From Paragordius varius (Eukaryota > Animalia > Nematomorpha), in assembly GCA_964247055.1 (NCBI GenBank), contig OZ176055.1:6634001-6698000 (forward strand): a DNA stretch of 64,000 bases, given 5' to 3'. Numbering within the stretch: the stretch's first letter is position 1; each line of letters begins with the position of its first letter. Below the pieces are notes generated by a model. It was not told the origin of the DNA. It did not search any database and saw only the letters and a list, made by a program, of their open reading frames with translations. The position numbers and the translations under genes were made by a program. This document shows positions 23,006 to 51,899 of the stretch, one piece after another.

Positions 23006-23068
23006 GACAAGTTAAAATATATTATTTGTGCGCATAGTTATACCCATCTGACTTCCATCTCATTTGAA
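23006..23068. promoter_or_regulatory. Putative bidirectional promoter, HSPBP1/NACA (63 bp ATG to ATG)
   Basis: Divergent start codons at 23005 and 23069; contains TAGTTATACC (23035-23044). Confidence 0.55.
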
Positions 23069-33461: not shown

Positions 33462-33515
33462 CTTTCTTTCACATGGTATAACTAAAATATGATCGTCGCG
33501 TAGTAGTGAGTAAAA
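33462..33515. promoter_or_regulatory. Putative bidirectional promoter, MTERF3/PP4R3 (54 bp ATG to ATG)
   Basis: Divergent start codons at 33461 and 33516; contains GGTATAACTA (33475-33484). Confidence 0.55.
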
Positions 33516-46399: not shown

Positions 46400-47836
46400 T
46401 TATAAATAAAATTTTCTTCGATTTTTTTCCATGACGTGTCTCTATGTAGATATAATATACATAAAACAAAATAAATTTATTTATAAACAAATCGTTATTT
46501 AATACAATATTTAATATTTTGGGGGAAAAAATAACTATATGTTAATTAAATTTAGACGATTTATAAAGTAACATAATTATTTACCTTTAACATCCAATCA
46601 TATTCTTTGTTTGAAGGATCATATAAACCGCGTTGGACAAATTGCAATCGTAATGTTATCCGGGGTCCTAATTCATTTAATGATACCCTTTCCCCATTTT
46701 TAAATTGATACCTATAGTTTTTTATAAACATTAACAATTCCAACTTCAATTAATATCACAAATTCATAATTACAGTCATGTATCCTTTATTTTATCATTT
46801 TTTTTTCGTTGAATGGGTATAAATATTTGGTAGAGGATGGAAAAAACAAGAGCTCTATGGTAATTATCATATATTTTAATGAATATGATATTGTAAATAC
46901 CATAGAGCTCTTGTTTTTTTCATTCTTTACCAAATATTTATACCCATTTAACGAAAAAAAAATTTTGATATATTAAAGGATACATGGCTGTATATAAAAT
47001 TTTAAATAATATTGAGCAATTTAAATATTGCCAGATAGCATTATTAATTTCTCGATGCGTAAAATGTTGGCAAAGAAAATTATTTTTAGGTACAAAGCTG
47101 TATTAATGGTGATGGACACTTTCTTTAATGTTATAGCAAGTGTGATGTTAAAGTATAAATGTAAAATAGTTGGTGGGAAATTAGATTTTAATATAATTTT
47201 TTTATGAATTGAATACTATGTTAATGAGGATTTTGAATGTAATTTATTAATGATTGATTTTGATATATTTTTAAATTTTTTCTCAAATATGGGATGAAAT
47301 ATGATGTGTTTTACTATTGTTTAGGGGTTATCGATTAAAACTAATAAGTGATTGGTTTTTGCTATTTTGGTGATTTCAATATATTTTGAAAAAAAATCGT
47401 ATATGGGATGAATTAGGATGTTTTAAATATTTTTTAAGGGGTAGATTAAAACCAATAAGTGGTTTCATAATTTTGATACATTTGTAAGTTTTACAAAATT
47501 TTAAGATTAATTAGTATATTTTTAATATATGGGGTCATCGATTCTAATTGATAAATTGCTTTTAAAAAATAACAAAATAGCAAAAACCAATCACTTATTG
47601 GTTTTAATCGATACCCTTAATATAGAACATCCTATTTTATCCCATATTTACGAAAAAAAATTAGAAATATAAAAATCAACAAAATAGCAAAAACCAATCC
47701 CTTATTGGTTTTAATCGATAACCCTAAAACAATATTACATCCTACTTCATCTCATGTTTAAAAAAATATTTAAAAATATATCAAAATCATTCACTATAAT
47801 CAATCATTGAATGACAATTAATATTCTAATTAACAC

Positions 47837-48567: not shown

Positions 48568-50723
48568 CCTATGATGTCGCAAAAATATATAGTCTCTTTG
48601 ATTATGGATTGTGAATAAACGTCGATGTTCAAAGTTTGGTGTTTGTGGGAAAAGGACGGCAAACATTGCACCCACAGTTTGACCCAATGGAGTGGTCAAG
48701 TTGGAAATTACGACCTCAGGGTTATCCATATACCGTTTACTACGGTGCTATTGAAATCATATAAATATATATCTGGCAATATTTTATAAAAAAACTAGGC
48801 ATATGACTCACACTATATATATAATGTAATTGAAAAGATAAAACATAAGCGTTAAAATATTCTCATTATTATATCCAAAAAAACAATTTTAAAGGGGTGA
48901 AATTAATTAAATTATTTTAAAAAAACTGGTTCAATACTAAGGATGACGACCTTACTTAGGCCAAACTACTAAAATAGAATATGTTGAAAATAAAAAGGAT
49001 TGGAAAAAATTTATAGAGTTAAAATTAAAATTATTCGGACAAAACGTGAAAATATAAAGAATGTTTTTCTAAAAGACAACCAAACTTTTTATGATTTATT
49101 TCAATATAACTCATTGTTTTAAATGGAAAAGTGTTAAATAGAGAGATATAAAACTAACACAATATATTTTATATTTTACAATAACTAAATAGCTTATATT
49201 AGAAAATTAGGTGTTGTCATTTAGATAAAAATATTTGTCTTTATATTTTTACGTTTTGTCCGTATAGTTTTAATTTTTCTGTAAAAATTTATCTCAATTT
49301 AGATACCTTTAATTTTGATATACAGCTTTATTGAGAATATAAACAAAATATATAAATATATGAAAACCTTAAAATGCTTTGAAAGTTTATAATTGAGTAT
49401 TTTGAAGTGGACAGTTGGCCCGTCCGGAAGGTGGCATAACAGTAAGGAATCTGTAATATATAATCAATCTCTCTACATATAATCGAATTTCTTAAATTTG
49501 GAGTAGGAGTAAAATTTGTAAAATGTACCAATTAAAACTCACAATAATATATAAAAATTAAATTTAAAGTACACAAGCCCAATTTTATTATATTATTTGC
49601 TTTATAAACCAATTTACACTGAATATAAGCCTTAAATTTAAATCAACCTATTATAATAGAAGTATTTAAAATAATTTATTGTTAAACATTAACTACTCTT
49701 AATTAATTAGGCCCGACTAAATGGTAAAAATGGTCAGCTTAACAGATGCTGGCAAAAAAGAAAATCATAAATAATATACTGAAAATAATTTTAAGATTAA
49801 AACTGGAATCATTTTCGCAAAAAAGGGAAATCGTTCCTAACAGTTTCAAGTTAATTTTAATCACTTAAAATTTTACGATGTTTAATTTTATCCAAATCAT
49901 AAAATCACCGTTTTAGATTCGCAGAGAAAAATAGCACACATTTACATAAGAATTTTGTGATTTGGTATATATGCTATTTTTAAATTTTGATAATTTAACC
50001 ATAATTTGCACTCTAAAATAATAAGGAATTATATATAAAAGAAAATTATTTGGGAAACCAGAGCAGTCTCAAACCCTAATAATTGTCATAATAAAAAAAG
50101 AAATATATTTAAAATTGTATTATAAAATTTAAATGCTTACTTGGCTCTTTCCTATCATCGTTTATAAAAAGGACATCCGTGAATCCTTTTTCAACAGCTT
50201 TCTTAATCATAAACTGTAGACTAACCTTTTTGCGTTTATAAAATTTTGCGTTTGGTATTAGATTTGCTAAATCACGGCAAAGTTTATGAGTGGTCTATGG
50301 TATGTATGTAATTTATATAATTAATTTATTTATAAAAAAATGCGAATATATACCGTAAAAGGTCTAAAACTTGATGTTATTGCAATATTGGGAGTGGTTA
50401 AATTTGCAAAATATTGATCAAATTTGCCTTTATTGAATTCGTATGACTATACAATAAGTGGGAAAAACTACTTTTTGTTCTGCTTCGGTAACCTCCTCAT
50501 GTACTCTGAGTGTTTCAATTGTGTGTGGAGTTGATTTTTCACCCTATATAGTTTAAAGATATATATTGGCAAGTCTTACCTTTGCTTTACGTTCCTGTCT
50601 CAGCTTTTTATTTTTTTTCTAAAAAAAATTATATAAATAATTAACCTTTTCCGCTTTTTGCTTCTCTTCAAACAATTGCCTTCGTCGAATTTTATTTTTA
50701 ACTTCCGATATATTGCTGTCCAT
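46400..50723 (-). CDS. RPF1: Ribosome production factor 1 (Brix domain); exons 50723-50646, 50618-50580, 50543-50472, 50446-50354, 50294-50141, about 49450-49368, 48747-48569, 46711-46585, 46441-46400
   Basis: SEVKNKIRR, TPHTIETLR, GFTDVLFINDDRKEPN, LCHLPDGPTVHFK, PEVVISNLTTPLG, HNQRDYIFLRHHR, sigma70-like LNELGPRITLRL, RHVMEKNRRKFYL*. Confidence 0.92.
46771..46992. mobile_element. Near-perfect hairpin MITE (TA-CAGTCATG...CATGGCTG-TA)
   Basis: Arms of about 93 bp (46771-46863 vs 46898-46992) are reverse complements with few mismatches; TA flanks suggest a Tc1/mariner/pogo origin. Confidence 0.85.
47015..48075. mobile_element. About 1-kb foldback element with internal subrepeats
   Basis: tgccagatagcattatt...(47029) vs aataatgctatctggca (48041). 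Inner arms 47200-47460 vs 47570-47820 carry duplicated AATAGCAAAAACCAATC.CTTATTGGTTTTAATCGATA blocks. Confidence 0.8.
48237..48513. mobile_element. CCATTTACA MITE family copy, opposite orientation to 44507-44771; right TIR replaced by (TA)n
   Basis: ccatttacaattcaaattcacccttgaacaatt... with three left 21-bp repeats; body is the reverse complement of 44507-44771. Confidence 0.75.
48514..48563. repeat. (TA)25 microsatellite abutting an RPF1 5' splice site
   Basis: Perfect TA run ending 3 nt from the GT donor at 48568-48567. Confidence 0.95.
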
Positions 50724-50749
50724 GCTCTAGCAAGTCTTTATTTTTTTAC
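50724..50749. promoter_or_regulatory. 26-bp spacer between the divergent RPF1 and COQ5 start codons
   Basis: CAT at 50721-50723 and ATG at 50750-50752. Confidence 0.5.
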
Positions 50750-51649
50750 ATGCATTTAAACAAATGTCGTAGTATTCAAAATTTTATTATCAAACGATTT
50801 TTATCAGAACCCCCTTATAAAAAGGATGCCTTCGTCAACTTCGGTTATAAAATGATGGATGAACAACAAAAATTTGACAATGTTAATAAAGTTTTCAGCA
50901 ATGTTGCCTCCAAATACGACATTATGAATGATTATATGAGTTTAGGCATTCACCGAATATGGAAAAATATATTTGTGGATGAGCTTTTTCCTGTTGAGGG
51001 TGGCTCCTATTTAGATGTGGCTGGAGGTACTGGGGATATAGCTTTCCGTATTTACGATTACATTCAAAAGCGCACTAAACCTATCCTAAATCCACATTTA
51101 TTAAATCAAGAATCGAGAAACGATCAAAACGACCATTCTTCCACTCTCATATCCATAGTCGATATTAATAATCAAATGTTGGAATATGGGAAAAGCAAAT
51201 GCCATCAAGTATATGGATCAAATTCTAAAACTCAAGCCTGTTTTAATTGGCATTGTATGGATGCCGAAAATTTAGGATTTGACGATAATTTCTTTGATGC
51301 TTATACAATTTCATTTGGGATTCGTAATTGTGTTCATCCACAAAGGGTTCTTCATGAAGCCTATCGAGTTTTAAAACCTGGTGGACGTTTTCTTTGTTTG
51401 GAATTCGGTAAGGTGAATTTTCCACCTCTGGCTAAATTGTACAAATTTTATTCATTCAATATTATTCCTGTTCTGGGTCATCTTATTGCAGGAGATTGGG
51501 AATCTTACCAATACTTAGTTGAAAGTATTGAAAAGTTTCCTTCTCAGCCTGAGTTTCGAAACATGATTGAGCAAGCCCGCTTTGATTGTGTGACTCAACG
51601 TGAACTATCCGGTGGTATAGCTGTAATCAGTTCAGGATTTAAAATTTGA
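50750..51649 (+). CDS. COQ5: Ubiquinone biosynthesis C-methyltransferase COQ5 (intronless, 299 aa)
   Basis: VFSNVASKYDIMNDYMSLGIHRIWK, SAM motif LDVAGGTGDIAF, DAENLGFDDNFFDAYTISFGIRN, EAYRVLKPGGRFLCLEF, YQYLVESIEKFP; basic transit-peptide-like N-terminus. Confidence 0.96.
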   Translation: MHLNKCRSIQNFIIKRFLSEPPYKKDAFVNFGYKMMDEQQKFDNVNKVFSNVASKYDIMNDYMSLGIHRIWKNIFVDELFPVEGGSYLDVAGGTGDIAFRIYDYIQKRTKPILNPHLLNQESRNDQNDHSSTLISIVDINNQMLEYGKSKCHQVYGSNSKTQACFNWHCMDAENLGFDDNFFDAYTISFGIRNCVHPQRVLHEAYRVLKPGGRFLCLEFGKVNFPPLAKLYKFYSFNIIPVLGHLIAGDWESYQYLVESIEKFPSQPEFRNMIEQARFDCVTQRELSGGIAVISSGFKI

Positions 51650-51899
51650 TTGCAATTTTTTATAATAAATATATATATTGTATGGATTAAAAAATGGATC
51701 GGATTTTGTGAATGTCAAATGTGTATTATTATTTTGTTGGTTCCTAACGGCACCGATTGCGCGCTGGGCCATTAAAAGTAATCATTTCAAAATGGTTTCT
51801 TTTTATAAAAAACGTTACTAAATTTTTCCAATATTTTAGTTAAGTCGTACTTTTGACTTTTAGGAGTTTTCGATTGCCGATTAAAATTAAAAATGTATT

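Follow-up and report, generated by a model that had tools for sequence, protein, structure and literature searches.

The subject of this study is a divergent gene pair in a 64,000-nucleotide stretch of the genome of the horsehair worm Paragordius varius (contig OZ176055.1, positions 6,634,001 to 6,698,000 of the forward strand), called here the window and numbered from its first letter. RPF1, the gene for the Brix-domain ribosome production factor 1, lies on the minus strand, and COQ5, the gene for 2-methoxy-6-polyprenyl-1,4-benzoquinol C-methyltransferase, lies on the plus strand. Both are essential genes, the first for ribosome assembly and the second for ubiquinone. They form a head-to-head pair, each reading outward on its own strand, and their start codons, read directly from the sequence, are separated by 26 bp. 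This spacing had been pointed out in an earlier note on the same DNA, whose coordinates and count were exact. Both genes are single-copy and the locus is unique in the 110.6-Mb assembly (44 contigs); therefore, both must be expressed from here, as working copies. The features at and downstream of the COQ5 side are listed below.

50721 to 50723, minus strand: RPF1 start codon (ATG at 50723 to 50721; CAT on the plus strand)
50724 to 50749, no strand: the ATG-to-ATG spacer, containing CTAG (50727 to 50730) and a T-rich run directly 5' of the COQ5 ATG; read directly
50750 to 51649, plus strand: COQ5, a single exon of 299 codons plus stop (ATG at 50750 to 50752)
51665 to 51670, plus strand: AATAAA, 16 nt past the stop, the likely COQ5 poly(A) signal

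The COQ5 open reading frame (ORF) matched the Pfam family Ubie_methyltran (PF01209) at 2.2e-73, covering profile positions 8 to 233 of 233, and the yeast Coq5 structure 4obw at 2e-51. An alignment was made of the window protein with seven animal COQ5 proteins (eight in total). Residues D89, A91, and G92 to D96 were invariant in it; the glycine-rich motif that binds S-adenosylmethionine was present, and the match to the UbiE/COQ5 family was full-length. The closest COQ5 protein on record was that of Gordionus sp., another horsehair worm (Nematomorpha), with 63% identity, compared with approximately 50% for other animals. Introns are absent from the Gordionus gene as well, and its putative presequence is of about equal length, with the start at the equivalent place. 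As an observation on the other end of the gene, the stop codon and the AATAAA lie within 51647 to 51670, and the 3' untranslated region (UTR) may match the 5' region in compactness.

The start of COQ5 was examined closely. Residues F31 and G32 were invariant in the eight-protein alignment, and both precede Met35/36; translation must therefore start before residue 35. The ATG at 50750 is the sole ATG between an in-frame TAA (50699 to 50701) and the conserved FGY block. Ahead of this block lies a basic stretch of approximately 29 residues, none of them acidic before position 20, as would be expected of a mitochondrial presequence. The context of the ATG is poor, with T at −3 and C at +4. The earlier note was correct that no other Met occurs until residue 35, and its claim that this N-terminus is needed is supported by the invariant residues, the upstream stop, the single usable ATG, and the start of the Gordionus protein.

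The RPF1 ORF on the minus strand begins at 50723 with MDSNISEVKNKIRRR. Its exons were searched individually against known proteins and not as a joined protein, with the following result.

50646 to 50723, minus strand: exon 1, 26 codons, MDSNISEVKNKIRRRQLFEEKQKAEK, with a GT donor at 50645 to 50644; weak match to human RPF1
50619 to 50645, minus strand: intron 1, 27 nt, GT..TAG, placed by the open frame running from exon 1 into exon 2
50580 to 50618, minus strand: exon 2, 13 codons, KKNKKLRQERKAK, placed by frame and splice sites, as are the next four features
50544 to 50579, minus strand: intron 2, 36 nt
50472 to 50543, minus strand: exon 3, 24 codons
50447 to 50471, minus strand: intron 3, 25 nt
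50354 to 50446, minus strand: exon 4, 31 codons
50112 to 50294, minus strand: open frame with exon 5, matching human RPF1 156 to 206 (E 3.5e-8)
49302 to 49463, minus strand: open frame with exon 6, matching human RPF1 206 to 233 (E 0.0027)
48568 to 48747, minus strand: open frame with exon 7, matching human RPF1 244 to 294 (E 1.9e-15), yeast Rpf1 (3.1e-15), and IMP4 (2.4e-4)
46564 to 46749, minus strand: open frame with exon 8, matching human RPF1 288 to 337 (E 6.8e-9), with a weak Pfam Brix match

Exons 5 to 8 matched residues 156 to 337 of human RPF1 in order, with far weaker matches to IMP4 and SSF1; judged by these protein matches, the gene is RPF1 and not another Brix protein. Two of the short exons were uninformative: exon 3 alone did not retrieve RPF1, being too short and divergent, and exon 4 alone, also too short, gave no significant match in the Protein Data Bank (PDB). 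Exon 1 matched human RPF1 residues 53 to 69 weakly (E 5.7), and yeast Rpf1 presumably begins at the same motif. An in-frame TAG (50729 to 50727) lies 6 nt, or two codons, upstream of the RPF1 ATG, which has A at −3 and G at +4, and exons 2 to 4 contain no Met. The homology, the in-frame stop, and the lack of a later Met in these exons bear out the claim that this N-terminus, too, is needed. Introns 1 to 3 (27, 36, and 25 nt, within 50447 to 50645) are T-rich before their TAG; the later RPF1 introns are approximately 0.6 to 1.8 kb long.

Because both start codons stand, the argument that 26 bp is too small for two conventional leaders plus a promoter holds. Barring a 5'-UTR intron or trans-splicing, the gap implies transcription start sites (TSSs) no more than 1 kb apart. 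To place the spacing in its setting, 264 kb of sequence was examined, comprising the window plus the adjoining 200 kb of the contig; the latter also served as independent sequence for motif tests. The G+C content over the 264 kb is approximately 27%. At least four divergent pairs with tiny spacers were found there, at 26, 42, 54, and 63 bp. The 63-bp spacer separates a 310-codon ORF from 23005 (minus strand) and an ORF from 23069 (plus strand); the 54-bp spacer separates an ORF with a Pfam mTERF domain from 33461 (minus strand) and an ORF from 33516 (plus strand). The 42-bp spacer, in the next 200 kb, lies between the gene for signal recognition particle (SRP) receptor beta (PF09439, 9e-16; minus strand, L008:25) and a 217-codon ORF (plus strand, L008:68). 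The plus-strand partners in these three pairs had no match in Pfam or NCBIfam; some of these presumably resemble the N-termini of SMEK/PP4R3 and ABHD17, a likeness that no family match supports. Enumeration of divergent ORF pairs against reversed sequence was uninformative, because the reversed control contained no long ORFs.

The earlier note had called the RPF1–COQ5 spacing extreme. It is the tightest of the pairs and extreme for an animal, but it is accompanied by three further pairs at 42 to 63 bp within the same 264 kb. Four such pairs in this distance suggest that tiny 5' regions are a habit of the genome, and that RPF1–COQ5 is the tail of that habit. As a separate observation, each of the three sister spacers carries near its middle a CpG-containing, partly palindromic word, TGCGCA (23029 to 23034), TCGTCGCG (33493 to 33500), or ACGCGT (L008:46 to 51). 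Such words are rare at 27% G+C, and the 26-bp spacer is without one; they are possible sites for a shared factor.

Our preferred interpretation, which we hold with somewhat more belief than doubt, is that a single miniature promoter region serves RPF1 and COQ5 in opposite directions, that both annotated ATGs are true, and that both leaders are very short. The TSS positions, leader lengths, and promoter elements are those that we infer from the sequence. Each mRNA would have a leader of about 26 to 30 nt or less, with its TSS in the 26-bp spacer or on its border. The pre-initiation complex of RNA polymerase II (Pol II) covers several tens of base pairs; because the spacer is only 26 bp, core-promoter DNA must then reach into the partner's first codons. 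The DNA that positions Pol II for each gene would thus include the first codons of the other and would have both coding and promoter roles. The features near the spacer that bear on this arrangement are as follows.

50701 to 50715, plus strand: ACTTCCG (ETS-like; CGGAAGT on the RPF1 strand) followed by the TATA-like ATATATT, in RPF1 codons 3 to 8, 35 to 49 nt upstream of the COQ5 ATG
50722 to 50730, plus strand: a two-codon upstream open reading frame (uORF), ATG CTC TAG, part of the COQ5 leader only with a TSS upstream of 50722
50738 to 50755, minus strand: a five-codon uORF with ATG at 50755 to 50753 and stop TAA at 50740 to 50738; read directly
50738 to 50755 region, minus strand: a second ATG, at 50751 to 50749, with TAA immediately after it; read directly
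50761 to 50753, minus strand: TATA-like GTTTAAATG, a candidate RPF1 promoter element in COQ5 codons 2 to 4, 30 to 38 nt upstream of the RPF1 ATG; a word without statistical support

The upstream ATGs of the pair are thus at −28 for COQ5 and at −28 and −32 for RPF1, and those on the RPF1 strand enter its leader only if its TSS is inside COQ5 codons 1 and 2 or beyond. Taking the four pairs together (eight starts), the nearest sense upstream ATG is 7 to 65 nt away, and in seven of the eight it is within 35 nt. If upstream ATGs are avoided here as in most eukaryotes, the leaders must be shorter than those distances. The compact 3' end of COQ5 was also counted for short leaders. A further indication of leader length came from GGTATAACTA, a word containing TATA, which starts 39 to 41 nt upstream of an ATG in two of the sister pairs; with the usual TATA-to-TSS spacing of about 30 bp, the predicted leaders are approximately 10 nt.

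Inside the RPF1 coding sequence, ACTTCCG and ATATATT are candidate promoter elements for COQ5, proposed from their sequence and position. CGGAAGT occurs nine times in the 264 kb, three times within 80 bp of a candidate start, compared with 0.5 expected; this proximity was found post hoc and is a weak lead. The CGGAAGT at 50701 to 50707 is encoded by RPF1 Ser-Glu-Val with the serine codon TCG, which makes up 9.5% of the Ser codons in long ORFs here. Mammalian mRNAs with short leaders have a consensus known as the translation initiator of short 5' UTR (TISU). By eye, a TISU-type context (SAASATGGCGGC-like) was absent from both starts, which shared with it no more than the ATG and, in RPF1, the G at +4.

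Several points weigh against short leaders from a shared promoter. Two divergent initiation complexes with TSSs no more than 26 bp apart would be expected to clash sterically. The poor context of the COQ5 ATG, on a very short leader, would favor leaky scanning to Met35/36. An exact-protein look-up of COQ5 for transcript contigs returned no record. A TATA element at a fixed position was tried as a common feature of the starts and rejected: TATAWA seemed enriched at −40 to −31 when the window was included, but was not significant at −42 to −28 in the independent 200 kb. Similarly, GGTATAACTA failed as a genome-wide promoter word, with 346 matches, many of them in one apparent tandem array of roughly 10 kb, compared with 865 in the reversed control. 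This word recurs every 8 to 15 kb, mostly about 10 kb, at approximately 1.81 to 2.61 Mb of contig C2 of the assembly (G000), in long same-strand blocks with several orientation switches, which suggests a large tandem array (perhaps of ribosomal DNA) in inverted blocks.

The arrangement also is not conserved in Gordionus, the nearest relative on record. The earlier note had raised conservation of the spacing in related species; in Gordionus the two genes are not adjacent, with no RPF1 exon within 10 kb of COQ5 and no close head-to-head partner of COQ5 visible. The adjacency of RPF1 and COQ5 is not ancient. The 5' region of the Gordionus gene appears, from its sequence, to be more conventional: 40 to 120 nt upstream of the ATG there is a short tandem repeat with TTACCTGTCAATTCTCAGTT-like units (L001:9880 to 9960), and the word GGGTATAAAA lies approximately 140 nt upstream. 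The G+C content of Gordionus is 26.9% (10.1101/2023.06.26.546503).

The most serious alternative, which we nevertheless regard as unlikely, is that each TSS lies well inside the first exon of the partner gene, so that the leaders are at least 40 nt long, the 5' ends of the two mRNAs are mutually antisense, and the one or two tiny uORFs in each leader are passed by reinitiation. Crossing the 5' ends would move the two initiation complexes far enough apart to avoid a steric clash, and overlapping head-to-head pairs, a recognized class in mammals, provide a precedent (PMC1487180). Each upstream ATG near the spacer meets a stop within one to five codons and ahead of the main ATG, a layout compatible with reinitiation; nevertheless, crossed transcription requires that upstream ATGs be tolerated in both leaders. 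The ETS-like and TATA-like words 35 to 49 nt upstream of the COQ5 ATG, together with the mild enrichment of CGGAAGT near candidate starts, would be suitably placed, but this motif support is weak and post hoc. The earlier note had offered two possibilities, nearly leaderless transcripts or starts inside the partner gene; both survive as the two leading explanations.

Spliced-leader trans-splicing offers a different solution, one that we consider very unlikely. In it the primary transcripts would begin at any point upstream within the partner gene, an outron would be removed at the shared CTAG (50727 to 50730), and the mature mRNAs would consist of a foreign capped leader followed by 19 nt (COQ5) or 3 nt (RPF1). 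The CTAG does supply an AG acceptor on both strands at these distances from the ATGs, and trans-splicing to the spliced leader SL1 is used widely in nematodes, a related phylum (PMC7986045). The taxon list of that paper, however, does not include nematomorphs, and none of the papers in the library searched connects nematomorphs with spliced leaders, with operons, or with UTR length. The Rfam SL1 model (RF00198) gave no match among 50 scored candidates. Matches to the nematode SL1 22-mer were also inspected for three of the four best in the genome: two were copies of a repeat and one was an unrelated, apparently coding site. None had a GT donor after it, and the layout of a spliced-leader RNA gene (leader, GT donor, Sm site) was absent from the matches inspected. 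The tracts before both AGs are weak, and that on the RPF1 strand is purine-rich. In the sister pairs, an AG is missing from the whole 42-bp spacer for one gene, and for another the 40 nt next to the ATG are free of AG.

The repeat family noted in this search has a 22-mer that is two to three positions off nematode SL1 (L022:1501 to 1548 and L024:1501 to 1548; G000 C4:5338835 and C2:14191890). The 22-mer is followed by TCGAAGG and no GT donor; the repeat is not a spliced-leader RNA gene, and it could mislead pattern searches for SL1.

A 5'-UTR intron that puts one promoter far off is more improbable still. RPF1 could, for example, start beyond COQ5, with COQ5 nested in its first intron; in a variant, a 23-nt micro-intron on the minus strand (GT..AG, 50749 to 50727) would be removed, bringing the ATG at 50755 to 50753 into frame, adding three residues, and making the two starts share an ATGCAT palindrome. 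The AG of the CTAG is a short distance ahead of each ATG, introns of 25 and 27 nt occur in RPF1 itself, and the 23-nt candidate, read directly, starts with GTAAAA, ends with TAG, and restores the frame. This candidate is, however, A-rich, whereas the short introns of RPF1 (25 to 36 nt) are T-rich before TAG, and GT..AG at a spacing of 23 nt is not rare by chance. A de novo search for short introns gave 1407 hits, compared with 1005 in reversed sequence, and this noise prevented the construction of a scoring model. The variant also leaves the puzzle in place, because the RPF1 TSS would still be inside the COQ5 coding sequence.

Finally, that one start is wrong, with COQ5 beginning at Met35/36 (which would widen the spacer to 128 bp) or RPF1 having another first exon, is hardly credible: the weak context of the COQ5 ATG, the weak match of RPF1 exon 1, and the approximately 50 extra N-terminal residues of human RPF1 ahead of the aligned motif speak for it, but the conserved F31/G32 and the basic, presequence-like residues upstream of Met35, the equivalent start in Gordionus, the lack of Met in RPF1 exons 2 to 4, and the loss of the beginning of the Brix domain that a Met start in exon 5 would cause speak against it.

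We return to the miniature shared promoter as the preferred explanation. A gap of 26 bp between start codons is extreme for an animal; a promoter region shared by head-to-head genes is a type already known, and RPF1–COQ5 stands at the far end of this ordinary type and does not represent a new kind of system. A bolder form, that near-leaderless Pol II mRNAs (leaders shorter than about 15 nt) arise throughout the lineage from micro-promoters written in the first codons of neighboring genes, is a tentative suggestion that we doubt more than we believe. If short leaders or crossed starts are true, the pair would offer an animal model for the minimal DNA of a Pol II bidirectional promoter and a model for coding sequence that doubles as core promoter. 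There is also a consequence for annotation: hairworm pairs of this kind will be mis-called by gene finders built to require a UTR or a gap between genes.

The arrangement resembles mammalian bidirectional promoters in having two divergent housekeeping genes and one short common upstream region, and the mammalian pairs likewise fall into overlapping and non-overlapping subclasses (PMC1487180). Mammalian head-to-head pairs are defined by TSSs no more than 1 kb apart; most are 1 to 400 bp apart, with a peak at 101 to 200 bp (PMC1487180). Those figures are distances between TSSs, whereas here the ATGs themselves are 26 bp apart, less than the footprint of one initiation complex. With the SL1 trans-spliced genes of nematodes the pair shares an AG near the ATG, very tight gene spacing, and membership in a related phylum; it differs from them in that the searches turned up no SL1-type gene, its acceptors lie in poor contexts, and there are sister spacers without an AG. 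The compact 5' regions proposed here resemble those of Giardia, microsporidia, and Entamoeba, whose compact and nearly intron-free genomes have AT-rich initiators, leaders only a few nucleotides long, and promoters adjoining or overlapping the neighboring genes. The hairworm differs from these in being an animal with a 110.6-Mb genome and RPF1 introns of about 0.6 to 1.8 kb. Nearly leaderless transcripts would mean protist-like compaction of 5' regions alongside kilobase introns and micro-introns of 25 to 27 nt in the same genes, a combination that we put forward as possible but doubtful; if it is true, compaction of 5' regions can evolve independently of the compaction of introns and genome.

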